Source: Penicillus capitatus
Taxonomy: Eukaryota > Plantae > Chlorophyta
Reading direction: 5' to 3'
Length of the DNA stretch: 64,000 bases
NCBI GenBank assembly: GCA_965649825.1
Contig: OZ287696.1
Span: 477,101 to 541,100, forward strand
The position numbers and the translations under genes are program-made. Positions 4,775 to 33,100 of the stretch are shown piece by piece. A model generated the notes under the pieces. That model had not been told where the DNA came from. It searched no databases and saw only the letters and a list, made by a program, of their open reading frames with translations. Each line of letters begins with the position of its first letter. Position 1 is the first letter of the stretch.

Positions 4775-6855
4775 ATGAGATTCAAGACGCTGCAGATAGT
4801 CTGGCACGAAAGTCAGCCAATCTTTGCGATCGAGTTTCTGTCAGACGGCGTCGTCGCCACTGGCGGTGCCGACAAAGTCATCCGCGTAGCCTTCTTACCT
4901 GTCTACTCGGCAACGCACCCATGAGCTTCATGTTCTAGACGTGGAGCGTAAGAGCCGTGATGCGGATGACGTCTTTGTGTGACGCTTTCTCTGCCGAAGG
5001 TCGATAAGAGTTTGGAAAAGAGCCTCGGCGTGACATTGGAGAGCGAATTGACTGGGCTCAACGGTTCCGTCAATTGCATTCGCCGTTCTCCTCGATGTGC
5101 TTTCCATCCTACCTGATGATCCTCATGAAAATCGCCGTGTCACGGACAGATGATCTGTTTGCAAGTGGAGGAGACAGAGGAGAAGTCATTGTGTGGAAAA
5201 GGAACGCAGAATATACAAAGGAGTCAGAAACGCAAGCAAAACCATGGAAGGCTGCTTCTTTCCTCAGGCACAGATAGCAGGTCATACTGAGTGAGACGAC
5301 GGTTAACTTTTCAGGGGTCATGCCAATGACATTTTTGATATGGACTGGTCATCTGATGGGTCATCCCTGGCGACGGTGTCGCTAGAAGGGGTCACAATTA
5401 TATGGGATATACAGAGAGAACAAGCAAAGGTCGTCGGAGATGGTTTTATACTTAAGAGAAGGGCGATGGATTTCTGGATGCGCAGATACGTTTGTGTGAT
5501 CATCATCATTACGTCCAAGGAGTGGCATGGGATCCTCTGAATCATTTCTTGGTGACACAAGGAGGCGATCGACGATGCAAGATCTACACACGATCTGCCG
5601 CATCGCATTCCAAGAAGGAGACGGCTGCCAAATCTGCAGGACAATGGAAAGTCGGAAGAACACTGCATAAAACAAAGAACGCCTTACGTACAGCAATCTC
5701 TGTCGTTCCGTCCACTGCTGACTGACAACGTCGATGCAGATGAAGAAGCATCACCATCTGCCAGAGAGTTTCTCTTTCACGACGACACCTTGACCAGCTT
5801 TTTCAGGCGACTGGCGTGGTCGCCTGAAGGTATGGATGGCATCCTTCGTGAGTTAGATGGCAGGGCGTAATGCAGGTTCGTTCCTGGTGGTTCCTGCTGG
5901 ATTGAAGAGATTTGGCTCTGAGAATCAGGCAGCCATCCACGTTGCATATGTATACATTAGAGGGAAATGGTACCTATATAATCCATTTGTGCAATATCGG
6001 GTTGCCCTGCCTGGTGGTGAATGTAGGTCAGTGCCTGGCGCTTGTCTGTTGGGCATCGGCGAGCCCTTTGTCGCCGTACGCTTCTGTCCGGTCCTCTTCG
6101 AGAACAGCACAGATGGCGACGAGAATGTGTTCTCGGATCTTCCCTACACGGTTGTATTTGCGTGTGCCACTCTGCACAGTGTCTTCATCTACACAACGCA
6201 GGTTACTACATGAGAGATGATCGATCGAGGTGTCCGTCATCTTGCCTTTGTGCAGAAATCCACGCCTGTCGCTTTGCTGTGCGGATTGCATTTTTCGACC
6301 ATTACGGATATGGCATGGTCTGCCGATGGGACACATCTGATGATCGCCTCTCGAGATGGCTACTGCACGGTGGTACAGTTTGAAGAAGCCGAACTGGGTG
6401 TACCCTTCGATCGTTCCACCCTCGCCAGCACCGATGCTGCGGCATCTGAATGGTTTGAATCTCTGGAAGAGGTGCAAAACCGCAAAGATCTGCTTCCTGC
6501 GAAGAGACACATCCGGCCACAGAAATTGGCGTCTGATGAAAAGAGACCTAATCTCGGGCGTCAGTGTCCAAGCGGCGTGCAGAGTCCAGCTCGTGCGAGA
6601 CGCAGGATCACGCCCATCGTTGTGGCAGAGGATGCCGAGGTCGAGAGCCAGACTGCGCCGCCCAAAGAGACAGACGAGAAGATCGCCGAGATGATGTCCT
6701 CTCGACAGACCCCGAGTTCCTCGTTCTTTTCAGAACTGAAGAGATTGGCCGGAAAGGACGAAGCCAAGACAGATTCTCCAAACAAAGGCACCACCTCATT
6801 GACAGATCTCTTTGCCATGAGCGCTCAACACGCCAAGGACCGCTTTGGACTGTAA
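4775..6855 (+). CDS. FAS2: Chromatin assembly factor 1 subunit B (p60/FAS2/Cac2), WD40
   Basis: MRFKTLQIVWHESQPIFAIEF, YVQGVAWDPLNHFLVTQGGDR, FFRRLAWSPEGSFLVVPAG, VAVRFCPVLF, LHFSTITDMAWSADG, SRDGYCT, and a C-terminal RRRITP (B-domain-like). Confidence 0.92.
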
Positions 6856-7097: not shown

Positions 7098-10000
7098 CTA
7101 CACTTCGAACGTTGTTGGACCAAATCCGTCGCAGTGCAATGCCCACATCTTATGAAACACCTTTTCGAGGTCTTTAACCCATCCCGCTGTGTCGAACAAT
7201 GGACAGGACAATCTTCGACGCTTTAACTCTTCTCTTAATCCAATACGTTTCTCATGATTCAAGCCTAGCTCCACAGCTTTCTCTTCGTACTCGACATGAT
7301 CCGTAACCACCATTTCACTCCCGAGACCGGTAGCCGTGCACAGACTCGCAGCCACACGAGATGCCATACGATCCAAGGGAAGAGTGATCATGGGACATCC
7401 ACCCCATAATACATCACAGCCTGTTGTGTGGGCATTGCACAGAGGGGTATCCAGGAAGACATCGGCCAAGCCAGAACGTTTGATATGGATATCTTTCTGT
7501 GCCACGTCTGTGAAAATGATTCTGTTGTGATCAACACCGTGATCCACAGCTCTTTGGCGGATCTTCTGTTCGCCGTAGGGAGGAAAACGCAACAACCAGA
7601 GAACGGAATCCGGAACGCGGTTCAAGATATTGCACCACGCTTCGAATGTCCTGGGATCGTATTTATACAGCTGATTGGAGCATGAGTAGATGATCTTGTC
7701 CTCGGGCAGTCCAAAATCGGTTCTGCTCGGCAAGTTCTCCCCTGTCAACAGATCTCTGTGTTGCTGTTTGTAGTCGTTGACAAAATAACAGTTGGGCATT
7801 AAGGCCAGTTTCTCTGAATAGCAGTCCCAGTGCTCTTGAGGGGCGACGACTTTGTCGGTGATCAAATACGGCAAGAAGGATGCACCTGTCGTTGCAGGGA
7901 ATCCCATGTACGAAGTCTGGATGGGAGCCGGAAGCAAAGCAAAGATCTCATTTCTGGCTCCTTTGGTATATCCATTTAAGTTTACGGCAATCTGGATACC
8001 GTCAGCAGAAATTTTGCCGGCGATATCGACGACGTTCCAGGAGGAGACATCAACGAAATGCTCGGCTTCTCGTTCGATCTTCTGACGCCATTCGGAATCA
8101 TCATTGGGGGAAAGCGCATAGCAGAACACTTCTATCTCCATACGATCATGGTATCCAAATACTGAGGCCATAAGATGCGACAGGGGATGGTTGCCAAAAT
8201 CACTGCTGACATATCCGATCTTCAATCTCTGTCCCGGAACCAGATGCGTGGCAGGCGGATGTGCAAACTTAGGCGCACCCAGACGCGATGCCGTCATCAA
8301 GCAGTGCTCTGCGTACTTCTTGCTAATTTCCAGTGCCAGATCTCGCGAGAAGGGATAGGCCATTGCATGGAAAGGCTGGACGGGTGGCAGCCTTCCGTTT
8401 GCCAGATCACGACGCACTTCACTCTCCAGTCTGAAAAAGAGATTGTCTCGGTCTTGCCAATCGCAGATACACTGCAAACTATGGACCAGATTAGCAAACG
8501 CCTCTGGGAAATCTGGACGAATCGTCAAGGCTCTTTTATAAGATGCAATCGCCACATCGTGCCGTGCTGCATCCTTGTATGCCGATGCCAGATTGGCATG
8601 AGCTTCAGGTGATTCAGGCTGCAACAGGGCAATGTGCTCGTAGCAGGAGATAGCTTCTGCTGCTCGTCCTTGCATCTTCAGAATGCCGCCCAGGTTGTTG
8701 TAAGCAACGGCCAATCTCTGCGCTTGTTGGGCAGCTGCAATTTGTGGATTGGTGCGATAGGCAGCTGCCATTGCAGCATTCTGAGGACGCTGGTACTGTA
8801 ACTGAATGCAGGATGTGTAACATTGAATGGCTTCTTCAGTACGGCCGGCTTCACGGAATGCGTTTCCCAAGTTATTGTAGGCTTCGGGAAAGTTAGGTTC
8901 AATCACGAGCGCTTGTTGATAAGTCTGAATGGATTGAGCCAATTTTCCTTGGTCGTAATAGATTCCTGTAAACTCCCCAGATTCAATGCAATCACTCTTT
9001 CAAAGAAGCTGGAAGGAACCTGCAAGGTTTCCAAGAGAGAGGGCACATCCCGGTCGGAGTTTGACCACTCGCTCAAAACATGCAGCAGCGTCGTCTTTTC
9101 TCTTGAGTTCTTTCAGGGAAACACCCATGCCTGTATAGGCATCGGCATAGTTCAGCTTCACTCTTATTGCTTGCTACACCATTCAAGAGTGGAATTTGAA
9201 TCAGAATGGCAAATGGGATGCTACTTCATAGCACATGACAGCTTGAAGGTGGTTTCCAGCTTCACGGAACAAGTCTCCCAAACCACGCCATGCCGGCGCA
9301 TAGGCTTTATTCAAACGCAGTGCTTCAGAGTAACATCTCTGAGCTGCCTGTCTGCCAACTTGTCCCTGAGCTCTCCACAAGTCACCCAGATTGTTATGTA
9401 CATCGACCTGTCACATCATATGCTTCGTTTGTAACGCGCTCGCGACATCGTGACAGAAACGCACTAGATTCGGATCTAGACGTAAAGCTGTCATGTAGCA
9501 TTCCATGGCTTGCGGAATTAGTCCCTTCTGCACAAGAGCACTCGCCATATTGTTATAAGCATCTGTGAAGCCTGGTTTCAATCGAATGGCAGACTGGAAA
9601 CACACAGACAACGACAGTATCTCGACAGGTGTCTTGTGGTGGATGTCGGACCTGATAGTAGATAATGGCCATATCATAATTTCCCATTTGTTGTAAAGCA
9701 TTAGCCAGATTAGCGTGCGCCTCTGCCATTGTTGGATCCAGAAGAATACATCGGTCGTTAAAGGCGATACATTGCTCATAGTTCTTCATCTGATAATAGA
9801 TCGCCCCTATCAAGAGCAAGACTTCGGTTCGATTTGAGTTCTCGACATATGCCTATCCAGCCAAACAGATGCATAACAGATAGATGGACAGATTCAGGCA
9901 CACGTACAGGTTGGCAGTTCTGTAGAGCCAGAGGGTAGTTTCCTTGACGATACGCTTCGTGCGCTTGACGTAGCAGCAGCTCTGGATCTTGCAACATGAC

Positions 10001-10453
10001 CGTCGCCTGCGAAGGCACTTGAACATTTCCTTGTAACACAGAAGCGTTCTGCATGACGTTGCTGTGCTGGTCCATCGCCCAGACGCCTGGAGACGGATTA
10101 TCAGTATCTCTATTCCCTGGCCGTATCCATCCACACCTTCCAGAACACATCCCTCGTTGACGCAACTCACCGTTTTCAAGCTCTTCGCGTGAGGCGCCGT
10201 AGTGGACGGACGCGACCGCCGTGCGCTGTTGTGGATGCATCAGTCCGTTTGCTTCGGTATTTGAGGCCGACGAGGAACGGTACGCCGAGTTCGTATCACG
10301 TCCGGAGACCGTCGCAATTCGAAAAGACGTCCCGTCATCGCCGACGCGTTCGTTTGTTGCGAGACCAAGCAAACGACTGTCGACCACTGCTGTCGCCCCG
10401 GGATCCATTCCATTCCCGACCCCACCCGGATTCTCTAAAGGCAAACCTGACAT
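7098..10453 (-). CDS. SEC: O-GlcNAc transferase, SECRET AGENT type (TPR repeats + GT41)
   Basis: Multiple TPRs (AEAHANLANALQQ, PEAYNNLGN). Catalytic motifs GYVSSDFGNHPLSHLM, NLNGYTKGAR, YMGFP, YKYDP, DVFLDTPLCNAHTTGCD and SRVAASL. Confidence 0.96.
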
Positions 10454-10733
10454 CGTTCGACGACCTCACCAAGGCTGTCGGCTCAAAATTCGATAAGACT
10501 ACGGCAAGCGAGGTTCCGTAGAGTAGCGCCACGTTTTAAAACGCACTTCCACGGACACCGCCACGCGACACGTACGCATTCAAGACAGTGAAGTTGATGT
10601 GACAGCGAGATGATCCGTTTGAACCCGCCTGACGTTATCATCGCGACAGTGACATGTTCACCAGTCCAGCCTCGTTCTTGTGGTCGTACAAACGCACGAC
10701 GCTGAATCGATTCTTCATCTCTTCGCACGCACA

Positions 10734-11111
10734 ATGTCTGTCGCCAGCCACGAATCGAACAGGAGCGTTTTCGAGTTAGTCGCCGAGCGATATCAATGGG
10801 TGCGTGAGAGCATGCGTCGTCCCTGGCGCATTATCCCTCCTAAGGCTCAGCCCGGTACGCAAACGGACATCGCCCCAGAAGAAAACCATTCTTTCGCGAG
10901 CTTTCGCTCAGAGCCGGCGCTCAAGGACGAGGACAAAGTGCACTCGTGGGATGACGGCGTGCCTGGACTGAAACATGTGGATTCGTTTGCGCTGTCAAAA
11001 GAAATGGTGCAGCAGGCAGAGGGCGAAGGAAAGGGCCCGTTTCGTTTTCTCAATAACATTTTATTGCAAGCCATTGCTGTTGTCTGCATCGTCTGCCTTA
11101 TCATCAAATGA
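10734..11111 (+). CDS. Hypothetical tail-anchored membrane protein, about 125 aa, intronless
   Basis: ORF MSVASHESNRSVF...FRFLNNILLQAIAVVCIVCLIIK*. A single hydrophobic segment lies at the extreme C-terminus. Confidence 0.55.
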   Translation: MSVASHESNRSVFELVAERYQWVRESMRRPWRIIPPKAQPGTQTDIAPEENHSFASFRSEPALKDEDKVHSWDDGVPGLKHVDSFALSKEMVQQAEGEGKGPFRFLNNILLQAIAVVCIVCLIIK

Positions 11112-11628
11112 TGTGACGGCTGGCTGCAGTGAGCGTCTCTGGGTAGCAGCCGTCTCAACATGATTCACCACAAGGCATGCACGATTTCTCTTGTTTTTAT
11201 AAATCTTTCAGAAACAAACTACCTTTTGTCGTGAACTGTCTCTCGTCTCGAAGAATGAGAAGTGTGAGACTGAAGAGGAGAAACACCATTCCTTTTATCG
11301 TTTGTACATGTTGTTGTCTGATTGGACTGCGGGAAAGCCGAATATTCGGTTGAATCTGAGTGTTGATTGATATGCACCGTTGTCTATGCTGGATTCCTTT
11401 TACAATGAAAAGTGTTAATGGTATAGGATTGAGTGGATAGGCAGACAGACACTGATGGGGTCTTAACCGGATGGATCCGTCTTTGAGGAGTGCACTAGGT
11501 CATTGCCATCTCTCTACATGATCGCGTACCGTATACCGACCGTATTTGTGCCTCTTACACGGCGAATCCGCACTCGCAGCGCGCTCGCATCGTCTTCTCT
11601 GTATCTGTGCGCAGCAGCATCGTCGAGA

Positions 11629-13082
11629 ATGAGTGAACAATTGGCGTTGGTGTTGGTTGGCGATTTGATGATGGGTCGAGTTGTCGACGCAGCGCTAAGC
11701 AAACACGGTCTGCGCCACGTCTGGGGCAATTTCCAGCCACTCATGAGCGGCGGACTGGCACGCAATCAAATCGTGGCCGGAAACCTCGAATGTGCCAGTG
11801 CGTCTCGCGACTTCGCATCGAACACAGCTTGAGTGAATGGAGATGTGCAGTCACGACACACGAAGAGAAATACGAGAAGGAATTCAATTTCAAGCTATCG
11901 CCGACGAATGCACGTGTCCTGAGGTAGAGGACGAATGAGGGAAGAAGGACTGGTGGATGGCCTGGCTTAGGATGGCGGCATTAGACTACGTGTCATTAGC
12001 CAACAATCACTCCATGGATTTCTTGGCTCCGGGATTGCTGGAGACGCAGCGTGTGCTGGAAGATACCGGCATTGCGTTCTCTGGAGTTGGCAAAAAGAAA
12101 GAGGCCATGATGCCAGCCTATCTCAAAAAAGATGAATATAAGATCGCTTTCTTTTCATTTTCAGATCATTATGACAAATGGGCAGCAACAGACACCGTTA
12201 TCACGCCTTTTCTCAGCTGTTAGATGTTGATACGGCTTTTTGTCATAGGAGACCGGAATTAACTTCATTAATCCAGCAGACTACGATTTGAGTGAATTCA
12301 AGAAACAGCTGAAATTTGCTCGGGAGGAGAAGGGAGCCGATTTCGTGATGGTGTCGATTCATTGGGGTCCAAACTGGTCCTGGCATCCATCCGTCTCTAT
12401 CTGCAACCTGGCACACGATTTCGCCGAAGCGGGCGTAGACCTTGTCTTTGGTCACAGTGCCCATCACATTCAAGCAAGACACGAAAGCTGACGATCTGTA
12501 CCGATTACTGCACGGCAGGGAATTGAGGTCTACAAGGGTGTCCCGATCATTTACGGAGCTGGAAGCTTCGTGGACGACTATGCCCTGGAAAAACTGTATC
12601 GAAACGACCTCGGCTTTCTTTTCTGCGTTCGAATCGACAGAAGAAAAATCCAACAGTTTATATCCCTTACTCCCACGCCTTTCATTACCAAGCTAGAGAT
12701 TGTGCACAGAATCGAGCTGTTGCCAGCCAAGATCGAACACGTTCGACAAGCAGAGGGCGAAGATCCGCCTTACATTTCCAAGGCATATCCCTTCGATGGC
12801 CCAAACAGAGGCAGGAATGACCAGAGCGTGAATGGATGCTGTAGGTGATGCGTGCCGCAGGCGAAGATTACGAATGGTTATCGAAGAAGATGACGCAGCT
12901 GTGTCGTTTCTTCGGCACACAGGTGCGTGCATCTCATCTCATTTCCACCCTCATTATCAAACCCTATCTGCGGTGTTTAGATTGAGGATCGTGGGGAAGA
13001 GAAGGGCATGTGTATCGACATGGCACCGCACGAAATCAAGGTCAAGAAGAAAAACACTCCAAAGCAGTTTCCCGGTCCATAA
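11629..13082 (+). CDS. CapA/PGA_cap-family (poly-gamma-glutamate synthesis-like) metallophosphoesterase-fold protein
   Basis: LVLVGDLMMGR, GNLECAVT, FNFKLSP, VSLANNHSMDF, VSIHWGPN, VDLVFGHSAHHIQGIEVYKG, PIIYGAGSFVDDY. The model has 6 introns, one of them GC-AG (12783-12844). Confidence 0.88.
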
Positions 13083-13099
13083 ACGATCAACTAACCGTT

Positions 13100-13104
13100 T
13101 GTAA
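13100..13104 (+). promoter_or_regulatory. TGTAA chlorophyte-type polyadenylation signal (CapA gene; representative example)
   Basis: TGTAA lies 18 nt after the stop. The same motif follows the stops of YacP (1856-1860, -), SQD2 (20358-20362), MnSOD (27248-27252, -), LysM (30135-30139), ArfGAP (46457-46461) and GTE (50459-50463), and overlaps the stops of FAS2 and the pseudo-helicase. Confidence 0.6.
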
Positions 13105-13276
13105 TGCACATTGTGCAGTATACATATATCGTGCCGAACACGGCATCGGCCCGTTCTGAATGAAACATTTGTGATTTCGTGGCAAACGCGAAATTGCAAA
13201 ACGCGACTGTTTCAAAATCGTTTTGTTTTGTCTTTGCCGCGAATACGAGCATTGTTCCTCGAGTTCAACGCCACCG

Positions 13277-16200
13277 ATGGAGAACAGGCTAAGAAACTAT
13301 AGCAGACTTCTGTCCGGCAAGATCGTGGACGGCATCCGGCCAGATGTGGTGGACAAAAAGATGGACGCCGGTGCGTATGCTATAGAATGCCTTGTATCCC
13401 ATCCGGAACGCAGAGAAGCTTTTGTCTTGGAACGAGACATCGCGCTTTCAAGTGCTGAGCCATTGCCAGTGCGCTCAGAAGATGTTTGTCAGTCGATGGC
13501 GACGGCGGATATTGTACAAACGCCAAGAAGACCTTTCTGTTCCGAGGCGGATATCCTGGTGGAACGAATGTCTGTGACCAGAAGCAACAAAAGCGCCTTT
13601 GATACTGCCCAACGTAAAGTACGTCGTCCTTCGTCTGACCGATGCGGAATGTGGATGCCGCGTAGTTTACCGTGTTTGTTGCGACGAAGTTGACGACAAC
13701 GGACAGCGAAAGGGGCATCGATCACGTGCTTCGTCGTGTGAGCAAACTCAACGGCCACACGGTGGTCGAATTTCGAGACAGGGTCGATTTTAAGCCAAAT
13801 ACCTCAGTCATATACTTCAAGCCAAGCGGTCCACGTTGCCTTGTCGTCAAACAATTCATGGGAACCAGAGCTACCGTGACACCAATAGATACGGAGTTTC
13901 CCGACAGGTTGTTGTTCGAAGGCGACGCGCCGAATGAACCGCCGAGAGTTTGTCTGGAGTCCGTGGATATCAGTTCGATATTGTATCATGCCGTAGAAGA
14001 GCAGCAGTACTCGGATGACGTTAATGACATTCAGACTGAGCGACAGTGTCATCATCATTTGCCAATGTCAACGAGAGGCACGCAGGAAGATGGCAGCTCG
14101 TCTGTCCGCCGTGACCTTCCAACTGCTGACGGCAGAGGGCAGGACGAAGAAAGGGCAAGCACTCTTCAACCGTCAGGTGCACGTACGTGTATAGATCGCT
14201 GTCGGATTCAGGTCGGCTCGTCAACATCAAGATTGGCCCGGGAACCGACGACGTCGGCCGGCGACCGGATGTCTCGTGGTGCTGAGAAACATGCGATGCT
14301 CCGCAACATAGCTCGCCAGTTCACCGTCGAAGAGCTGGTGGACGCTCTGACGGAATGCTTTCCGCGCGATGATGTGCGACGGGCGTTTGAGACGGCAGAG
14401 CGTCAAACCACGGCGAGCATAGTGGCCGCGACATCATTAGATGACCAGAGCGTACAAGAAGAACGTCCGTTCAAGATGGCGTCTCGTGTGGAGATGCATA
14501 GACAGAGCTCTGTGGACATACTCGATCCCCTTTTCTGTCTAACAGAGTCAGCTGCATCGATAACTGAGGAAACGAGAGATGCAGCTAAGAGTCTATCCAA
14601 TCCCCCGGCGAAAATGACACGCACGTCGATATTCGCTGGGGACGGAATGGAGCATCGTTCACAAGCAGAGACAGAGGAATGGGGGCGCCCAGATGACGCG
14701 CTCTCCAAACGACACTATGAGAAAAAGGACATTGACGCACGTGTGATATGCCACCGTATTGACAGTTCCTCGTTGATGGATGAAAAATCTGTTGCGGAAA
14801 CAGCAAAAACGGGGCCAGAGGAAAGCACATGGTCGACAAAGATCGGAAGATCGAGTGTTACCACACTTCAGGATGGCGCTGGACCTTCGTCGAAGGGCTC
14901 TCAGCAGAGATCTATTTTGCCACTAAAACTGAAAAAGCGATCGGAGAATAGACACAAACCGTGTCTGGAAGATGAGATGTCAGATTCGACATCTTCAACA
15001 GGCGATGAGAAACCGCCGTGTCCCACAAACGTGAAAACCCCAAACGACGACGATGCCCAACTTCTACAATATGCAGAGTATGGCGTCAGCTCCTATGTAC
15101 GACAGAGGAGCACATTCTAATTGATTGTTCTAGGGACGCTCAAAGAAGCCAGCAGAAGATGGCCGTCCTCGTCAGGGGACAGGACGATGGTGAACGCGTG
15201 GAAAAACTGCTGGAATCATATAACGCTGTTTACTTTCCACCGTAATGGCCCTTACACGCTCGATGCATGCAACAATCTTGATACAGGGGAGCACTGAACG
15301 ACAGCAAGTTTGATAGGTTGCTCGACAAGCATAATATCTTGATTACGATGCCTTCCGTTTGGAAGAAGCTGTCAAGGGAGCGCCATCTGCCAAAAGTCAA
15401 ATATCTTGTAAGATTCAAGAGATCCGATAACCGATTTATGCAGATGTGCTGTCCGGTGGTAGGTGGATGTGTCCAACGGATATCATAGAGAGTGTCTTGA
15501 AGAGATCGTCAGGATCTATTCACAGCTAAGGTTTGAGGTAGAAACGAATATCAAGGTCGTGTGCATTCTCTTATTAACAGTATGGATGACGAGATTCTTG
15601 ACTTTTAGATGATAGACGTTAATCGATCAACGCCGAGCCTTTCTGGCACATCCACATCTGTCACAAAGCCTAAGACTCCATCCACAAGAACTCTTGTCCA
15701 CACGAACATAGAAGACAGAGCGAAGGAATTGAACTCCGAAACAGAATCGTTCATTGAACGCGCTGCAACTCTTCCACAGTTGCAGACCCAGGGAGACGAC
15801 AAGGGTCCACATAAAGAGTACGTTATCAACCTTTCGGAAGAAATACATCAAGTTGTCGAAGACACGAAGAACACAGTAAAACGCTTGATTGGACACGTGA
15901 ATCGGAATCTTCGGGAAATAGGTTTGTTCAACTAAGTTTATGCCGTTCTGATTGCATGGACGTTTGTTTTTCTCGTAGGCATCCAACCAGTCGATGCAAC
16001 GATTAGTAACGAGCGTGTCTCTATTGCTTTCGATGGAGCTGTGAAAAACTGGGCATCAAAGACAGAGAAGAACATCAAAGGGCTGCGAGAGAGAGATCTG
16101 AAACAATTTGAAGATTGCCTCAACCTCGTTATGTGTCTATCTGAAAGTACTATTCTCATTCCCTTTAGCGGGATAAAGTACGTAAGAACAGTCATCAAGT

Positions 16201-16688
16201 CCCAAACAGAAGATCTGCAGCCAGAGTTGAAGCAAAATTGGATTCCCCAAAGGTTGCAAGAAAACGACAGAATTCATCGAGATATTGACGACGACTGCAA
16301 ATGTTTTGCTAAATTAGTAAGTCTGTTACTAAAGTTCGAGAATTGTCCTAATTTTCATGCTGTTCTATACACACACTCTGCTGGGTGTATGGTTTCGATC
16401 GAGACTTTGCTTTCAAACCATCCTTCCTTGTCCTGGCTCACCGTCACCAAGCAGTGTACAAAGAGCGGTGATCGGAGGTACAGAATGTCAAAAACGGAAA
16501 GAGAAAAGCATGTCAGAACCTTTGTCAAAAGCGAAAAGGCGTTGTTGATTCTTACCGGCGCCTACAGAGATGTTTCGAACGATGGAGTTGACATTAATGC
16601 TGTCTATTTCTATGGAGTGCCTAAAGCAAAGCATAACGAGTACTCTCTGCCCGACAGAGTATTCACCATTGCACACGATCTTATGTAA
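13277..16688 (+). CDS. About 1000-aa protein: unknown N-terminal region, long disordered linker and a degenerate (inactive) DEAD-box-like two-RecA-domain module
   Basis: Seven-exon all-GT-AG in-frame model: 13277-13618, 13690-15077, 15134-15241, 15287-15407, 15463-15537, 15609-15921, 15980-16688. It yields MAVLVRGQDDGERVEKLL...NILITMPSVWKKL...LPKVKYLVDVSNGYHRECLEEIVRIYSQL and AVLYTHS...MSKTEREKHVRTFVKSEKALLILTG...GVDINAVYFYGVP. Confidence 0.65.
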
Positions 16689-17088
16689 CGATTAATTCGC
16701 AAGTGCCGTGCCAAGAAAGAACACTTGTTAGATCACACATCTTATGGCCTGATTGTTTGGTAGCGTATATCGATTGTGTTTAAGGTATTTGTCTCTCCCC
16801 TTTTCAGTCCATTTTTGGCTGCACATCTACAGAATGTCAGTTTGCCCTCGATGAGAACGAGCAGAAGTCCTATGCGCTTTCTCTTTTTCAAGTTACTAGA
16901 ACTTTGGAATTTCCTCAGTGCTCAGTATTGATTTGTTGCGCAGGCCACGAAATGATCGTTATTAGTACTATCAAAATGGGAAAGGATGATGATGAATGAC
17001 GAATCATGGGATGGATGTATCGAGAACTAGTTATTCTAGTTTTGTAAGGATGGATGGTTAGACTGCAATGAAAAACCGTGCCAGAGTA

Positions 17089-18340
17089 TCACACATGCTG
17101 CAGCGTCCAATCCAACGTTAGTTCTACGATTTTCTCATGTCCTGGTTCTTTTAGCAAAAAATGCCACATATCATTGACTTCCTCAAATCTCTTGTCAGAT
17201 GCCTGTGAACCAACGATAGATTGACAGAAGGTATATGGGAGATGTGAGAAATGGAGAGTACTTTGGACAGGTCCATCAATTTCTGAGATCCCTCAAAGTC
17301 TGTCATCTCATCCTCTCTGCTGTGCACGACCAGAAATGGAAACGACATGTTGGGCATTTCTTTCAGGGTCATCTCGGTTGCTCTCAAATACTCTGTTGAC
17401 GTCCGAGCTCTCGCATAGTGATGAAAGCACAGCGGATCTGAAGACAGCAGAAGTTGAGTAAGCGGTAGAAATGCACTCCGAATCCTCTTCTACCATTATC
17501 GAAGGCCTCTTGAATCTCTGGGAATTTATCGTTCTTTGCTGTTTTCGCGACGCACAGGTATGGTGTAAGGGTGCTCAGCACAGATGCTAACGGCCTAGAA
17601 TCAGCAAACTGTCATAGAAGGATGCAGTTATGTTCGAGTCACATCACCGCAGATAACGATTCACTCCTTGCTGAGTGATCTTCTCCAATGACAACATCGG
17701 AGCTAATAGCACGGCCCCTTTGAACAAGGCACCCTAAACACCCAACAGACCCTGAGCTGTATCTACAGGAGAAAGTCCGTTGTTACCCTCTGATGGATAG
17801 CATTGACAGCAATACATCCACCTAGACTGGCTCCTAATATGACAATTGACAAACCGCTGAATCCTGGCAAATCTTCTCCCGTGTTGACATCCCTGGTGGG
17901 ACAGCATTGCTTGCAACAGAGGCCAGATGATGATGGTCTCACTCCACGAAGTGCAGGAGATCGTCGACTAGGTCTTGAAAGCGATTGACATAACATCGCG
18001 CATTGTTCAGACTACTCGACAATCCATGTCCTTGGAAATCCAAACCGCACACAGACAAGCCACGTTTGTTCGCCTGCTCGACAAACGACTCTGTATAGGA
18101 AAACTGTCCCGGCGTAGTCTACACAACACGTCTGCAGAAGCATTTGGGATACCGACCGGCACACACCGAATGTTTCAAGTAATCGAATCCCATATGTGCT
18201 CCATGTCCGTGGACGGCGACGATGACGCCACAGGGCTTCTCTGATGGCCAGAAGTAGCGGCAGAGCTGGATTCCTCGGGGATTCTCTCGATACTGTACAA
18301 AGCCTTTTGGACCGAGTGCTGTTTCGTTCGGCACGTCCAT
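17089..18340 (-). CDS. Monoacylglycerol lipase/lysophospholipase (Hydrolase_4 alpha/beta hydrolase)
   Basis: VIVAVHGHGAH, LDFQGHGLS, nucleophile elbow ILGASLGG, FLVVHSREDEMTD (Asp), MWHFLLKEPG (His). Confidence 0.9.
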
Positions 18341-18478
18341 TTTCTAGAGGTACGTGCAGACGTTGGTTGTCAGTGCACTTGACATCTGTCACATCATGAT
18401 GATCTCCCATGTCGAACGAAGATTCTTCTGGGATTCTTTGAACGGCCTGATCGCCTGTTGCTCATTAGACGCAGTCGA

Positions 18479-20201
18479 ATGATGCTTCCGAAGACGCTGA
18501 GCGTGGGTACGTCGCTGCGGACCCCGCCTTTCGATATCCACGACCGATGCCGCGTCTGTCAACTGACGCTATCCCATTCGACTCCCAAACGCAGGCCTAT
18601 TGCCAAATGTAAACTTCAGCCGCCGTCAGTAGTTCAGATGTCGCAGTATGGTGCCATCCAGTGACGCCTTTGCCCATTCGAACGAACCGTTCGCTAAAGA
18701 AGGAGAGAATCGTTCGTCTCCAGTCCATGTCGGGCTCGACCCACGCATCCAATCAAAATGTCCCCAAGAGAATTGCGATTCTTGTTGAGCCTTCTCCTTT
18801 CACCTATGTCTCTGGATACAAAAATCGATTCTGCAATACGATCAAGCATCTGGTGGAGGCGGGATGCGAAGTGATGGTTGTGACCACAGGTACAGCACAT
18901 AATGTTGATGAAGTGACGGCTGCATCATCTGTGATGCATACAGGTCGAGGGTTTAAGTGGCCAGGGGCTGACAGTTCTGCCATGAAAGATGCGCCGGAAA
19001 CATATTATGGCGCACAGGTGGTCAATAGCTACAGCTTTGGATTTCCGTTCTATCCACAATTGCCTTTGACCCTCGGTCTCTCTCCACGAATCTACAAAAA
19101 ATTGGCAGACTTCAAACCAGATATTATTCATTGCAGTACACCTGGTTTCCTGGTGTTCGCTGCATGGGTCTACTCAAAGTTGCTCAAAGTGCCTCTGGCG
19201 CTGTCTTACCACACACATGTCCCAAAGTATGCGCCAAAATACAATGTGGCCTTTTTGGTGCCGCTGCTTTGGACTCTCATTCGCATGATGCACACCGCTG
19301 CTCAACTGACACTCCTCACGAGCACGTTGATGCAGAAGGAATTCCGTTCTGAGAAAGCCGCCCCAGACGAGACACTACACGTCTGTCTTCTCGCCCAGTG
19401 TGATTGGATGCATGTATGAGAGATGTGTGATTAGGTGTGGCGCAAGGGAGTGGATACAGAGGTCTTCCATCCTCGGTTCCGTTCTCCAGAGATGCGTAAG
19501 AGGCTGACAGATGGTCATCCCGAAGATCCAGTGATGGTTTATGTCGGCCGCCTTGGTAGTGAAAAGAACTTGACCTTTCTCAAAGCAATTATGGCACGTC
19601 TGCCACATCTACGTCTGGCCTTCGTTGGCGATGGGCCCTCAAGGGAAGAACTCGAATCCTCCTTTGCCGGAACGAAGACGGTGTTCATGGGAATGCTGCA
19701 TGGAGAAGAGCTATCGGCCGCTTATGCCAGTGCCGATGTCTTTGTCATGCCGTCCGAGACAGAAACACTTGGTTTTGTGGTAATGGAGGCCATGGCTTCA
19801 CAGATACCTGTCGTGGCTGTTCGAGCTGGCGGTATTCCGGACATCATCGATGATAAACGTACTCGTTTGTTGCTACACACATTTCTGTCAGGGGTTCTGG
19901 TGTAGAGAAGGGCGGATTTCTCTATGACTCTGGTGATGTGACAGCAGCAACGTCGCTGGTTCAGTCACTCATCGAAAATGAAGACTACAGGTGAGGCGTG
20001 ATGACGTGACAGGCTGTATAACGGATGTGATTGTGTAGAATGAAAATGGGCATGGAAGCGCGTGCACAAGTGCAACGATGGGACTGGAGAGCAGCAACCA
20101 TGCATTTGCTGACAGTGCTGTACCCCATGGCTATCGCCCGATTCAAAGAACAAGCTGCCGAAAATCAGACAATGCCAAACCCTGCTCCTGCGGCAATCTG
20201 A
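18479..20201 (+). CDS. SQD2: Sulfoquinovosyltransferase (sulfolipid synthase, GT4)
   Basis: RIAILVEPSPFTYVSGYKNRF, SYHTHVPKY, WRKGVDTEVFHP, YVGRLGSEKN, FVGDGP, FVMPSETETLGFVVMEAMAS, RWDWRAAT. A transit-peptide-like first exon starts at 18479. Confidence 0.95.
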
Positions 20202-24492: not shown

Positions 24493-25944
24493 TCAACGCA
24501 TTTTCAGGGCGTATATGGATTCCTCTGCTGCTCTGTCCAGCGCATTCCTCGCCTCGGGCAGAGAGGTCAGTAGTGCCAGCATGCCCATTACTGTGCCTTT
24601 GTATGCCTGGCTAATTCTCCTTGAGAGTTTTCTGTCTCCACTCTCCTAATCCACATGCTCAGAGAACAGCGAAATATAAAAGTGTCATACTTCTGCCGCT
24701 GTCTTCAATTTCGTCTGGTATTTGTCGAAGACTCTTCTGACAAGTGGTTTCCAGATTCGACCACGGGCATTGACGAACCAGTTGTTAATCTGAGCGATCT
24801 TCAGACCTGTGGTAAGGCTCAAAGCCACTTTCTCCTGGCTGACAGGATAGGGCATCATTAAGTGCGACAGGAGCCATTCCTTCAATATGGCTGTTGTTTT
24901 CTTTGGCAAGTTTTCGCGTTTTGGGTGAACGCGGCGCTTCGTAGAAGGACGACAGAGTTGCCTCTGCTCTGTCTCTGCTATGCTTTGTAGTGGAAGCTCT
25001 GAGTAGATGTAAGACTGTCCTGAGAGCTGTGTGTGACAATGAGTGACATCCTTTGTTGGTTGAAGATGTCCACGGGGCGAAAGACAATGATTGACTGACC
25101 AATTTCGCCCATCATCGTCTCCACTCGATACGACAATGCTTCTGTGAAGTTGTCCCCCTCCTGCAGTGTAGTGCATTTGCGAATCCGCTGTCAGCCATTC
25201 TGGATTCTGCGTTTGGGTCATCAAGTGCGGTACTGTAGGTAACCGAGGCGGATTTGACATCCGTGCTCTCTCAAATGTCATGGAAGAGTGATGACCATAC
25301 ACTCCTCTGTTGCATCTCGCATTGGTGTATGGATCACACGGAGCTTCGGCAAGAAATTCTGCTGATCTATAAGTATTCCCTGTATCGTGCACAAAACGAA
25401 AAGGATTGACGTGAGGGTCTTGTCCCGTTGGAAACATCATCTAACATCGCAAGTGTCAATGCGCTGCTTGCTCTCTGCGGTATGCCTTACTTGTCGGTTC
25501 GATCCATTGTCATGCATTCTGTTGAGGGCTGTTCTGAATTCAGCATCGGCCATAGTGGCTCTTTTCGTATTTCGATGGCAAAGCATCTCATGCTCCACGT
25601 CGACAGAGCTTCTGTACGTGTCGCTAAGATCATCCGATGGACCCTCGGGTCTATTCATGATGCCTCGCACAGATCCAAAGACAGCCTGGTTCCCAACCCC
25701 TCTGTTGCTATTGGTGCGATAATCTGCCATTTCTGATCTTAAACGAATGCCATCTTGCAGTCTGCTGAAGTTCGGTAGATCGGTCATTGATGGCATTAGT
25801 TTCATCTTCAGAAAGGACTCCAGTCCATCCGTCATCGAGCTTCGTCTCATGGCGTTCGTTTCATCTGGAAGCACTGCAAAGCGAAACAGATGTCTGACAC
25901 CGGTGGATCAATAGGCTCAGCTTACCAGAATTATCCGACGTCAT
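24493..25944 (-). CDS. TALE-class (BELL-like) homeodomain transcription factor
   Basis: RENLPKKTTAILKEWLLSHLMMPYPVSQEKVALSLTTGLKIAQINNWFVNARGRIWKP with the PYP loop. Four-exon model MTSDNS|VLPDE...|MMFPTG...KTAAE|AYKGTV...LKMR*. Confidence 0.88.
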
Positions 25945-28933: not shown

Positions 28934-30023
28934 ATGGCTTCCGTACCGTCAAGCGAGAAGGGGTCCGAAGATTCGGCGTGTGCTGAGCTCCCGGAGAGCG
29001 ACACTCCTGGACCGTCTTCCACAAGCGTGGGAAGCGAGATTAAACCACAAAAGGAGTTCTTTGTTCACAAAGTGCCTTTGCTTCGGTTTTGCTAATCTCC
29101 GCAATGAAATATATGACCAGGTCTTGAAACATGACACACTGGCAGGTCTGGCTGTCCGCTATGGTCTCTCGGTAAGAAGACAGACACTAGAGTCGGGATG
29201 GCAACGGTGATTGGCTGTCAGGTGTTTGATATTAAGAAGGCTAACGGACTGGTGTCAGAAAGGGGGATCTATGCACGCGAGACATTAATCATACCATTGC
29301 ATCCATCCAGTGACATGGGGTGTGTCTGCTTTCATGTACAGAGAGAGGAAGAGTGATGTCTGAGATGCTGTTCAGGAAATTAGACCATGAGATTTCGCAG
29401 GAATGGATAGGAATGTCATCCGTCGATGCATTCAAGGGATCTTTTCAGCCATCCACTTCCAGACAGCCATATCCTCTATGCACTAGACCCTATCGGAGTG
29501 AGGTCATTGGGTTTGGGAGAAAAGTGTGAGAGCTGTTATAGGCACACTATCATGGAGCGGATTGCTTGATGATCAGGAAATGCGATCCGTGTCCGAAATT
29601 GAGTTAGAAACGTTGGACGATGACAGACAACATCAGCGGTCAAACGATGCATCGTGGCCGTGGAGGAATACAAGTTTTGAAAGGAATAGGAGTGTCTATG
29701 TACCGTCGTCTCCCGCTGCTCTCATGCGGAATTCGCAGCCTCAGAAATCAGCGACAATTTCTGAATACCTGACATCGATGGCGACGTCCTTTATCAAAAC
29801 GACAGAACAGTTATTCAGTAGTCATCCCTCCCCGACAGGACATCCGTCAAAATCTGCGACACTGTTTGAGAAATTAAAGAAAGCAGCATCGAGGACAACG
29901 CTGTATGAGAGTTTAGCAGGACAGGCGCCGGAAGAGCCGAGGCAGCAAGCGGAGCGTTTGAGACCCAAAGGAGCAACAGAAGGGAATTTATCTGGAGCAA
30001 AAGATCTGTCAAAAATGGATTGA
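28934..30023 (+). CDS. Intracellular LysM-domain protein with a long Ser-rich C-terminus
   Basis: Spliced FFVHK|VLKHDTLAGLAVRYGLS|VFDIKKANGLVSERGIYARETLIIP. No signal peptide. Confidence 0.85.
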
Positions 30024-30199
30024 ATAACACACAAGAGACGAAAGGGGCTGCTGCGCAATAAAGCTTCCTCATTGGCAACAAGGATCATTTGCTTCTATAC
30101 CAGGCTTTCAAATTCAATCGACCCAACCATCCCTTGTAATAACTGTCGCTGTATGTCATGGACACTGAGGGGGAGGATGTTTGCCGATGGCTGTCACAG

Positions 30200-33100
30200 T
30201 TAAGCAAAAAGACTGTACTCGTGGTCAAGTCCCAGATAGCAATCGGATACAAGGAACAGCTCAATATGCTCTGTATTCGTTGATGCTTCTTTAAAGAATT
30301 TGAGCTTCACCGATCGCTTCACATTGTCCGGAATCGAAACGCGTTTCAGGACGAGCAGTTCACCCGTTGCTCGATCTCCAATGACACACCACCAGCTCTC
30401 ATCTTTGATCTTAGGAAAACGCGGAGCAAAGGCCGTGCCAATGGGTTTCTCACTCTTTCGCAGACGCCTGACGGTTAACTGCAATTCGACGAAATGTGTG
30501 AGCAGAGGCGGCGCATCGTTATCTGTGCCTTCATGCTGAACATCCTGTGGCTGACGTATGACTTTGGGCCTTCTGAAATCGACAGTCACCGATGGAAGAC
30601 GACGACACATCTAAGCAGGACAAAATGATAAAGAGTGAGAAAAGTGTGATCGATCGGACCTCGATGGCCTGTTGCGTCGGTCGTTCATCAATGATGGGCG
30701 TCAGAATCTGAAGGAGAATATCCACCTTGCGCTCCACAACTGCAATCATTTCGGAAACACTCTCTATCCCTGCAGAAGCGAGCGCTGCCACACACTGTTC
30801 TGTGAGATGTGGCACTGTAAGTAGACTACTGGCATCGAACCAACGTGCCTGAATAACAGACGTCACATAGATGATTGGAGAATTCAGTCAGACCTGCATA
30901 AGGGACTGGATAAGTCGCATGATCGAGAGGGCAGTGTTGAGCCATCCAGCATCGGCTGCAATGTCCACCATTGCTTGCAGCAGACGCAGACTGTTGTCCA
31001 ATGCTCCCTTCGTATCTGTGACGTAGTCCGTAATCGGAACGGGCAATCGGGAGAGGTGTGCTTGAAGCAGAAGATTTGTCTTTGTGTGTGCATCCCCAAT
31101 CGTTGCCATATCCACTGGCCAACGCACGTCCTCTGCTAACAACATATTCAATTTGTCTTCGTTGTGACGCACAGGCAGATCATCATACTCAGCTGCGTGG
31201 CACAGAATCTAACAGCATCACATGTCACGAGGCGAAGGCCTTGGCACTGGGATGAAGAGCTGACATGCAGGATGGATGACATGTCGTTGTTGGAATTGAG
31301 ATTCTGCGAAATCATGGCCATCGTTTCGTGTTTTATATAGAAGAAGGATGCAATTCTGCCCATTGTGAGAGACTGCAAGGAGCCATCCTCTTCCACTTTG
31401 AGACATCCAGCATTCTCCAGTGTCCCGCAAACGTTTTCTACCATGTCTGAGAGAAACATGTTGATATCGTTGGCATCTGTGCTGTCCAACGAATAGAATG
31501 AAGGATTTCGAAGGAGTCGGCGAAAAAAGTACGTCCAGGTCAAGTAATCCACAGCATCTTGCTTCGATGCAATCGTCCCTGCCACGATCTCTGCATTCAA
31601 ATGATCAGATACCTAAAAACAACCCTTTGCCTATCGGTGCAGGATGAGATGGCTTAACATGTTCCGGCAACGAAGATTCCACCGGAAAAGGCTCGTAGAG
31701 GAATTTTTTGTAGAAGGGCTTCTTGGGTTCATGTACCATAATGACTGCCACTCCATGGGCATCATACTGAGGCCGTCCAGCACGACCCATCATCTGAAGG
31801 ATATCTGTGATTGGCATATCGACATAGCGATGTGTTGGGGCATCGAAATATTCCGTCCCCTAGGTTTACGCATATAAGCAGAGAGGCAAGAAGAGATGTA
31901 TGTGTGAGACCTTGATGATGACGAGATGGGTGGGTGTGTTCACACCCCAGGCCAGTGTCGATGTTGCCACCAAGACCTGGATCTTTTGTTCGACAAAGAG
32001 TCGCTCGACAATCGACCGGTCCTTATTGTTCAGTCCAGCGTGATGCATGCCAATGCCAAACTGCAATGTGTGCTTCAAACTTGCATCCTGGACACAGTGC
32101 TCTGTAGAAAACAGATGCAGTCGGGCGGCGTCTTGCTTTGATATGTTCCAGAACTTCTGTCGTCTCCGATTCATCGAGTTGCAGAAATTGCTGTGGGCGT
32201 TGATCTGCTGCGGCAAAGGCAATGAGATCCAATGCTGTTAGCCGCGTTTGACGGCGACTTGAGACAAACACCAGAACAGGCTTTGTCGGAGAGTGCAGTT
32301 GTATGGCTGCGTAAGCAGGCTTGTTCATGGATGCCATTCTCGGACAGTAGAACTTCCCTGTCACATTCAAGCCCATCGATCCATGAACGATGACGGTTAA
32401 GGAGTCAGTCACCTGCGAATCCCTGAATGTGACATTCAAGGGGAACAGGACGGACAGATGGACGAAAATTGAAGAGGCCCTCTTCTTCGACGCCCATCCA
32501 TTCTGCCACATCTGGAGCATTGGCAAGTGCTGTACTTAAGCCCATGATGCGAATGGATGTCTTCATTTGAGAGGCGATGTAACGCATGCGTGAGACGATG
32601 ACTTCGATGATCGGCCCACGATCGGCGCCCAGCAAATGGATTTCGTCAATCACCATCAGTCCCACTTTGCGGACATAGGAACGTGACTGCCAGTTGCGCG
32701 AAATCCCGTCCCACTTCTCAGGTGTCGCAATGATGATATTGGCTGCGCTCAATGATCTAGAAACGATGTGACGTTGGTTCTTGATCTTCAGAGCTGAAAA
32801 AGAGTGACTTGATATCTGGTGTGTAATCTCCTGTCAATTCGATCATCTTCTTGTCGAGGAGCGGACAGAGTTTGTTTCCCCAATCATCTAACCGTTCTCT
32901 GACGAGTGCCTTCAGCGGTGCAATGTACACGACTCTCTGATCCGAATGAAGAGTAAAGAGCCTCAACATCGCCAACTCTGCAGAGATTGTCTTCCCTGAG
33001 CCCGTCGGCGCTCCCAGCAGCACATTCTGATTGGTGTGATATAGTGTATGAAACACCTGGGTCTGGATCGGATTAAAATGCGAGAAACTAAGAGACAGCG

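Follow-up and report, generated by a model that had tools for sequence, protein, structure and literature searches.

The window analysed here, a 64,000-nucleotide stretch of Penicillus capitatus contig OZ287696.1, consists of eukaryotic nuclear DNA with a GC content of ~49%, and its list of open reading frames (ORFs) contains nothing but fragments between 13223 and 16688 of the + strand. The question raised by this locus is whether these pieces belong to one gene and, if they do, what kind of protein it encodes. The reading favoured here, with reasonable rather than high confidence, is that 13277-16688 (+) holds a single seven-exon gene whose product carries, in its C-terminal ~450 residues, a dead superfamily 2 (SF2) helicase core of the RIG-I/Dicer type and is non-enzymatic. 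Such a gene escapes standard domain annotation entirely: Pfam does not recognise it, and gene callers break it up.

The ORF fragments, all on the + strand, lie at 13223-13693, 13672-15120, 15018-15245, 15318-15488, 15463-15612, 15609-15935 and 16041-16688, and a frame shift or stop separates them at six places. For the gene model, frame-keeping GT-AG pairs were enumerated and those with consensus signals were chosen; the model removes predicted introns only and reads through no stop. The result is one gene with seven exons, separated by six GT-AG introns 45-57 nucleotides long, and with a spliced product of 1,032 residues. When 1.84 billion representatives were searched exhaustively with phmmer, ten proteins came back, all of them gene-caller fragments of the same gene from four assemblies, while a word-indexed search of 5.8 billion proteins found nothing with the full model and recovered itself and one distant orthologue (L003) with an exon 7 alignment. 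The related loci are as follows:

L004: allele of the same species, 99.3% identical
L001: sister species, sharing the OGT-PGA_cap-gene neighbourhood with the window
L003: distant species, with the synteny OGT-PGA_cap-gene-hydrolase-GT-SRP receptor
L002: a 2.3-kb contig

The elements of the gene model are:

13277-13618, + strand: exon 1, residues 1-114, beginning at the first in-frame ATG; codon score +0.14, other frames negative
13619-13665, + strand: intron 1, 47 nucleotides, GTACGT...TAG, phase 0
13666-15077, + strand: exon 2, residues 115-584, a short conserved N-terminal region followed by a long polar linker
15078-15133, + strand: intron 2, 56 nucleotides, GTATGG...CTAAT...TCTAG, phase 2
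15134-15241, + strand: exon 3, residues 585-620, strand-helix-strand MAVLV...AVYF, the equivalent of the motif Ia region
15242-15286, + strand: intron 3, 45 nucleotides, GTAATG...ACAG, phase 2; counterparts at L001 6959-7003 and L003 5388-5427
15287-15407, + strand: exon 4, residues 621-661, with ILITMPSVW
15408-15462, + strand: intron 4, 55 nucleotides, GTAAGA...GGTAG, phase 0
15463-15555, + strand: exon 5, residues 662-692, with the motif II remnant
15556-15608, + strand: intron 5, 53 nucleotides, GTCGTG...TTTTAG, phase 0
15609-15921, + strand: exon 6, residues 693-796, a linker and the first helices of a Hel2i-like insertion (long predicted helices)
15922-15978, + strand: intron 6, 57 nucleotides, GTTTGT...CTCGTAG, phase 1; equal phase in L001, L003 and L002
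15979-16688, + strand: exon 7, residues 797-1032 and stop, the last part of the helical insertion, then the Hel2 domain

In all seven exons the codon score, a log-odds measure trained on seven Pfam-confirmed ORFs of the window, is above zero in the frame of the model, and each of the five other frames scores lower. Exon 1 shares 61% amino acid identity with L001 5011-5343, and exon 2 compared with L001 gives an omega (the ratio of non-synonymous to synonymous divergence, Nei-Gojobori) of 0.38-0.56. Intron 1 has a counterpart of equal position and length at L001 5344-5390 with 42 of 47 bases identical, and the position and phase of intron 2 are kept at L001 6798-6850 and L003 5222-5273. The introns also match in style the two of the neighbouring Brr2 gene (51 and 46 nucleotides, GT...TAG). 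An end of exon 5 at 15537 was rejected for 15555, the ...NIK at this point being conserved in L001 and L003. A first-pass annotation of this DNA had proposed that the fragments become one frame after splicing and encode a hidden protein of ~1000 residues, and in both respects the model agrees with it; its four short introns, however, are too few, as six are needed to keep the frame open.

This architecture is retained across species. All six introns lie at equal places in L001, introns 2-6 are equal in position and phase in L003, and the last intron is likewise kept in L002; even the most distant orthologues, at 26-28% identity, keep splice sites and phases. The ORF is intact in the window, in L004, in L003 and, by way of an extra intron, in L001, so that the gene is intact in every genome where it is readable. 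An apparent frameshift (-5 nucleotides) in exon 2 of L001 was rejected, since it is removed by a 55-nucleotide intron inside the exon 2 equivalent (L001 5856-5910, AAG|GTAAGT...TGTCAG) with a consensus donor. That donor was created by the 5-nucleotide difference, and the extra intron looks like a recent gain in the disordered linker. Exons 3-7 do not constitute an independent gene, because exon 3 of L003 contains no Met and has Val at the position of the Met in the window. The order OGT-PGA_cap-gene-hydrolase is common to three genomes.

The ancestry of the C-terminal half emerges from profile comparisons. phmmer searches of this half against the Protein Data Bank (PDB) gave noise only, whereas a four-species alignment of the C-terminal part (A2), used as a profile against all PDB sequences, matched RIG-I, LGP2 and Arabidopsis DCL1 as the sole entries below an expectation value (E) of 0.03 (E 0.003-0.03). 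These matches cover the end of Hel2i and Hel2; a second segment, collinear but insignificant, pairs dklldkndvlitmPsvW with RIG-I EQIVENNDIIILTPQIL. A profile of Hel2 (A5, the last 135 columns) retrieved LGP2 at 3.3e-4, DCL1 at 4.4e-4 and MDA5 at 0.05 and 0.13, and RIG-I-like receptors or Dicer account for all nine of its matches up to E 10, while a column-shuffled control of the same profile gave one unrelated match at E 1.1. Against a 20-sequence vertebrate RIG-I alignment (A6), hhalign aligned query positions 330-481 to RIG-I 558-715 with E 1.3e-4, and at low stringency the alignment runs collinearly from motif Ia to motif V (60-484 to RIG-I 286-718, 425 versus 433 residues). On these grounds the Hel2 domain is homologous to that of the RIG-I-like receptor/Dicer clade. 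The assignment, made with four sequences, is one to clade level, with a RIG-I-like receptor, Dicer or FANCM as candidate parents. The first-pass description of the C-terminal half as a descendant of an SF2 helicase with lost motifs is thus supported (it has no Gly-rich P-loop, has lost the Glu of motif II and lacks motif VI), but its label "DEAD-box-like" is not, because Pfam is silent and the significant profile and fold matches all fall in the RIG-I-like receptor/Dicer/FANCM clade, whose members bear a helical Hel2i insertion.

Structure prediction is consistent with the same layout. The predicted secondary structure consists of a helix and four strand-helix units, ~200 residues of long helices, and a strand-helix-strand-helix-strand-strand series, a pattern that reads as RecA1 minus its first strand, a helical insertion and RecA2. 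The corresponding predicted regions are:

15055-15632, + strand: Hel1-like alpha/beta region, residues ~578-700, across introns 2-5; helix (H) and strand (E) order H-E-H-E-H-E-H-E, without strand beta1 and the Gly-rich P-loop
15633-16283, + strand: all-helical insertion in the Hel2i position, residues ~701-898, across intron 6; from AlphaFold2 (AF2), hhalign and Foldseek
16284-16685, + strand: Hel2-like RecA2 domain, residues 899-1032; from PDB profile and hhalign matches

An AF2 model of the C half from the single sequence has a predicted local distance difference test score (pLDDT) of 37 and is unusable by itself, and a second model was made with a thin multiple sequence alignment (A8) of exact exon translations from orthologues, reaching pLDDT 60-74 in Hel1 and 50-63 in Hel2. 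When this second model was searched with Foldseek against 350,542 PDB chains, the first 46 ranks contained MDA5, LGP2, RIG-I, Dicer, FANCM, DCL4 and Hef only, with a best E of 5e-7 and full-length alignments of 460-550 columns; FANCM (rank 29) and Hef (rank 49) are the weaker clade members. The single-sequence model placed RIG-I and an ancestral Dicer helicase at ranks 1-4, non-significantly. DEAD-box proteins occur neither in the top 50 for the A8 model nor in the list for the single-sequence model. A Hel1-Hel2i-Hel2 layout consistent with the RIG-I-like receptor/Dicer clade is therefore predicted, with the first lobe weakly supported. Of the two RecA-like domains that had been expected from the first reading of the DNA, the second is matched by profile and hhalign, while the first gave a negative PDB profile search and a marginal hhalign result.

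The loss of catalysis can be followed motif by motif. The peptides quoted in the first-pass annotation are all present in the spliced protein:

14992-15015, + strand: SSTGDEKP, residues 557-564
MAVLVRGQDDG, residues 594-604
NILITMPSV, residues 637-645
LPKVKYLVDVS, residues 655-665, spanning intron 4
LEEIVRIYSQL, residues 673-683
MSKTEREK...LILT, residues 966-989

SSTGDEKP, however, does not hold as motif I: it reads STRSDQLP in L001, cannot be aligned in L003 and is situated in sequence of disorder-like character. An alternative remnant is the dipeptide K-T closer to the first helix (window NVKTPN, L003 YTKT), which has no glycine, and no conserved counterpart of PTGxGKT is present in any species aligned. 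The exon 4 segment ILITMPSVW is the equivalent of RIG-I motif Ic, IIILTPQIL, at a collinear position in hhalign; where RIG-I has TPQ, the aligned sequences read TMPS, TMPS and TTPQ, the last being TTPQVW in L003. In motif II, LVD is invariant (A4 columns L87, V88 and D89), and the place of ECH after it is taken by VSN, VSD or SMS, so that the Asp alone is kept and the catalytic Glu is gone in all species. The counterpart of motif III (TAS) is NRS in the window only and is not conserved. Motif IV is kept as F-h-x-h-h-x-T (FHAVLYT in the window), and in motif IVa an invariant R-M-x-K (RMSK in the window) stands where RIG-I has G-M-T. In motif V (TSVxEEGxD), Thr alone is invariant, with an invariant Arg four residues on, giving T-[GA]-x-[YF]-R (window ILTGAYRD). 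Motif VI (QxxGRxR or HRxGRxGR) is absent in all four species, as the first-pass annotation had stated together with a general erosion of the catalytic motifs, which the lack of a P-loop, the motif II Glu, a conserved motif III and motif VI bears out. Of the invariants of the RIG-I ATPase motifs, no more than two are invariant here as well, the Asp of motif II and the Thr of motif V. Because the P-loop, the motif II Glu, motif III and the motif VI arginines are gone, the protein is most likely unable to bind or hydrolyse ATP. In all four species it ends 25 residues after motif V. A convergent hydrolase gene adjoins it. Since the protein stops right after Hel2, it lacks the RIG-I C-terminal domain, the pincer and the Dicer nuclease modules; neither PF11648 (the C-terminal RNA-end-binding domain) nor the ERCC4 nuclease domain gives a Pfam match, and no sequence follows Hel2 that could hold the latter.

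The N-terminal half is of a different character. Residues 1-235 are conserved in the window species and L001 only (58-62% identity), and this half has no Pfam match, CARDs included; an N-terminal profile against the PDB retrieved nothing relevant, a TrpA match at E 0.025 being regarded as chance. L003 (3640-4330) seems to lack residues up to ~310, corresponding to exon 1 and the beginning of exon 2, and no start codon was found for its model. The N-terminal region may therefore be a lineage-specific addition. Shared after approximately residue 310 are a helical segment AEKHAMLRNIARQF...RRAFETAE, the polar linker and the hexapeptide below:

14917-14934, + strand: LPLKLK, unvaried among three species and located shortly upstream of the helicase-like core

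The first-pass picture of an uncharacterised region followed by a long disordered linker fits these observations, as the region has no detectable relatives beyond the orthologues and a low-complexity linker follows it.

Nei-Gojobori estimates of synonymous (dS) and non-synonymous (dN) divergence between the window and L001 are:

Whole gene (1,005 codons): dS 0.62, dN 0.27, omega 0.435
N half: dS 0.589, dN 0.283, omega 0.48
C half: dS 0.671, dN 0.256, omega 0.38
Hel1 exons: dS 0.703, dN 0.205, omega 0.29
Hel2: dS 0.611, dN 0.239, omega 0.39

The difference between the proportions of synonymous (pS) and non-synonymous (pN) differences gives z(pS-pN) = 7.1 for the C half and 6.3 for the N half, and in a hand calculation pooled pN lies below pS by z ~9. 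Neutral evolution, which the first-pass annotation had singled out for checking, does not fit an omega of 0.44 against L001 with pN significantly below pS. The neighbours are far more constrained in the same comparison (omega 0.007 for OGT, 0.05-0.10 for PGA_cap and 0.09 for the hydrolase). Amino acid identity to L001 is 57-62% for the gene versus 99.5% for OGT, and the dS of 0.62 is about twice that of OGT (0.32). Across the syntenic block conserved with L001 (window 8200-18200), DNA identity is 92-95% upstream (8200-11200), 65-82% across the gene and 82-86% downstream, which makes the gene the most diverged part of the block. Judged by these substitution patterns, the gene is under selection yet fast-evolving.

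A further peculiarity appears within the species. Between the window and L004, 38 single-base differences are spread over window 9672-18896, and 30 of these fall in 13367-15209 (L004 3696-5538), that is, in exons 1-3; 20 are non-synonymous and 10 synonymous. The gene's introns and exons 4-7 contain none, and each flank of ~3.7 kb contains four, so that divergence is ~1.6% in the cluster versus ~0.1% in the flanks, an approximately 15-fold difference. The ratio of non-synonymous to synonymous polymorphism (Pn/Ps) is 2.0, and the corresponding Dn/Ds of counts against L001 is also ~2.0 by a rough hand estimate. Because the two ratios of this McDonald-Kreitman contrast are about equal, there is no sign of adaptive fixation, and because synonymous sites share the excess, another cause is needed for the 15-fold local enrichment. 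The cluster may be due to balanced haplotypes of old age, to gene conversion with a paralogue as donor, or to an effect of the assembly. Farther downstream, beyond 18927, the window and L004 no longer keep an ungapped register, and this suggests an indel between the alleles within or beside the GT4 glycosyltransferase gene (18661-19419).

Several results weigh against a single gene with a dead RIG-I/Dicer-type core. Pfam DEAD, ResIII and Helicase_C give no match even at E<=10, whether ORF pieces, spliced halves or four orthologues are searched. The profiles are thin (effective number of sequences, Neff, ~2) because there are only four related genomes, and the probability attached to the hhalign alignment with A6 is only 54%. 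The first lobe is the weakest point: a Hel1-only profile has no match in the PDB, and hhalign of Hel1 alone, whose best segment lies at the collinear motif Ib-Ic position, scores 27.3 where the best of 60 column shuffles reaches 26.1, a narrow margin. The A8-based AF2 model has a mean pLDDT of 45, which is low confidence, and its Foldseek matches have TM-scores of 0.13-0.20; given these low scores and the misplaced lobes, the Foldseek result represents local 3Di/amino acid support, not a solved fold. The short introns of the gene are 78% identical to those of L001, and a dN of 0.27 is about equal to this divergence, so that constraint is weak. Finally, scans of JGI metagenome and metatranscriptome contigs found no copy of the gene, whose splicing is predicted from sequence.

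Against this background, descent from a degenerate DEAD-box (DDX) helicase, as first suggested for this locus, is very unlikely. The spacing from MAVLV to LVD and the hydrophobic pattern fit motifs Ia-II of any SF2 core, and would suit such a helicase as well; yet the PDB contains hundreds of DEAD-box chains, and the profile matches are nevertheless all RIG-I-like receptors or Dicer. To this are added the silence of Pfam DEAD and Helicase_C and the absence of DEAD-box proteins from the Foldseek top 50, a ~200-residue helical insertion between the lobes that DEAD-box proteins lack, and the TPQ of L003, a motif Ic of the RIG-I/FANCM type in place of TPGR. A lineage-specific orphan without helicase ancestry, whose matches reflect chance or generic alpha/beta similarity, would explain why phmmer returns orthologous fragments only, why Pfam is silent, why the Hel1 profile is negative and why the AF2 model is of low confidence. 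It is nonetheless considered unlikely, given that searches of a hidden Markov model against sequences, of profile against profile and of the 3Di fold agree on one narrow clade and on collinear positions, with a negative shuffled control.

The fast evolution (57-62% amino acid identity, compared with 99.5% for OGT), a dN about equal to intron divergence and the vanished catalytic motifs could describe a decaying pseudogene or non-functional relic. That the ORF of 1,032 codons is uninterrupted in two alleles and has stayed so, along with splice sites and phases, in orthologues at 26-28% identity, that pN is significantly below pS in each half and pooled, and that the L001 frameshift is absorbed by a consensus intron make this highly improbable. 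A division into two adjacent genes, with exons 1-2 stopping at 15118-15120 and a second gene starting from the ATG at 15159, has in its favour that unspliced intron 2 gives a stop at 15118 and that an ATG (MAVLV) lies 39 nucleotides downstream. In intron 2, however, the donor is good, the branch site reads CTAAT and the acceptor TAG, and position and phase are kept in three species; L003 has Val for this Met and an exon 3 without any, and an intergenic gap of 38 nucleotides is implausible, so that two genes can hardly be credited. There is equally little to recommend an active NTPase with non-canonical residues: the motif II Asp and the K-T dipeptide do survive near the expected place, but no species has a Gly-rich loop, catalytic Glu or arginine finger. 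A role driven by conflict is indicated by the fast divergence and the local hyper-polymorphism, and the gene might be engaged in an ongoing genetic conflict, for instance by serving an antiviral sensor as adaptor, by decoying viral suppressors or by regulating an active helicase of the RIG-I or Dicer type, its N half being kept polymorphic through balancing or diversifying selection; as a specific account this is rather unlikely.

For the favoured single gene with a catalytically dead core, a function can be proposed in outline. The product would combine a lineage-restricted N-terminal region and a long low-complexity linker with a helicase-derived C-terminal core of ~450 residues, which would descend from an SF2 helicase of the RIG-I-like receptor/Dicer type through Hel1, a helical Hel2i-type insertion and Hel2. 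The protein may act as a non-enzymatic scaffold or regulator, and the scaffold or RNA-clamp role of the first-pass annotation has the same inferred standing. The Hel2 and Hel2i surfaces that it retains would contact duplex RNA, partner proteins or both, and an active helicase of the RIG-I or Dicer type might be modulated, while the linker and the polymorphic N-terminus would serve as interaction modules. Its nearest analogues in this respect would be LGP2, XPF and DEAD-box pseudohelicases like Utp25. It thus probably binds partners and performs no enzyme work.

RIG-I-like receptors and Dicer are what animals chiefly use to sense double-stranded RNA (dsRNA), and a central part in RNA discrimination is ascribed to their ATPase cycle; RIG-I-like receptors are those duplex-RNA-activated ATPases that act in signalling, and LGP2 regulates MDA5. 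The RIG-I-like receptors RIG-I/DDX58, MDA5/IFIH1 and LGP2/DHX58 are the best profile and fold matches of this protein and share its predicted order of Hel1, helical insertion and Hel2, the HEL1-HEL2i-HEL2 architecture of RIG-I-like receptor and Dicer helicases (PMC8659333). From motif IV to where motif V begins, the family-typical pattern is preserved as F..vl.T......L..L.WLT......RM.K.....F....lliLT, and the absence of a detectable CARD recalls LGP2. Unlike these receptors, the protein has no G-x-G-K-T, DECH (Asp only), TAS or Q-x-x-G-R-x-R, possesses neither pincer nor PF11648, and carries an unrelated N-terminal half of 570 residues. For the Dicer helicase domain, DCL1 is the second-best match of the Hel2 profile and Dicer helicases occur in the Foldseek top 11, yet DUF283, PAZ and RNase III modules are missing here and the ATPase motifs are lost.

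XPF is a Hef-type helicase core without ATPase motifs that has turned into a binding module. The structural clade of XPF/ERCC4, FANCM and Hef is shared, FANCM and Hef being among the Foldseek matches, but this protein has neither an ERCC4 nuclease nor (HhH)2, and its sequence profile favours RIG-I-like receptors and Dicer; the XPF module is named a "helicase-like domain" (PMC5510004). A naturally ATPase-dead member of the RIG-I/Dicer clade without the C-terminal RNA-end reader, kept by selection across species, would offer a natural experiment on the Hel1-Hel2i-Hel2 scaffold in the absence of catalysis, as XPF does for the Hef/FANCM branch. Invertebrate members of the same clade include DRH-1 and DRH-3, likened here by description, which differ from this protein in possessing a C-terminal domain and an active, dsRNA-dependent ATPase; a truncated copy is represented by drh-2. 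The DRH proteins are described as Dicer-related helicases of C. elegans (PMC7397212). The concept of an SF2 scaffold kept without catalysis is shared with the pseudohelicase Utp25/Def (PMC9539457). Utp25, however, is DEAD-box-derived, universal and slow-evolving, whereas the present gene appears RIG-I/Dicer-derived, occurs in few genomes and evolves fast. FRH, named as a dead helicase by the first-pass annotation, is an Mtr4-type enzyme with intact motifs, unlike this protein.

The remainder of the window comprises well-conserved genes split by very short introns, among them an SRP receptor alpha, the GT4 glycosyltransferase and an S33 hydrolase, in addition to the following:

6217-6855, + strand: CAF1B/HIR1 beta-propeller fragment
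7098-8942, - strand: OGT
~11457-12848, + strand: PGA_cap-family gene
24685-25440, - strand: TALE-class homeobox (Homeobox_KN)
~30000-36000, - strand: Brr2/SNRNP200
39232-40215, - strand: ORF with a C-type lectin domain

Judged by gene content, the source would probably be an animal with a small genome, the homeobox, C-type lectin and CAF1B/HIR1 sequences being the best indications. Rfam and tRNA scans of the window found nothing. In the 90% cluster of OGT (window 7101-8906, - strand), the JGI entries include a 992-residue product on a 3.5-kb contig, which resembles a spliced OGT transcript of this organism or a close one; the metatranscriptomes of relatives identified through this cluster hold no copy of the 13277-16688 gene. 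The PGA_cap gene (poly-gamma-glutamate capsule synthesis, CapA-like) is of bacterial type but has introns, adjoins OGT and is kept in three syntenic genomes, and it may represent an old horizontal acquisition. A 225-residue ORF with an ATG at 9776-10453 (- strand) has no Pfam match, is 85% identical to L001 and shows an omega of 0.36, which makes it a second fast-evolving unannotatable gene of the block.

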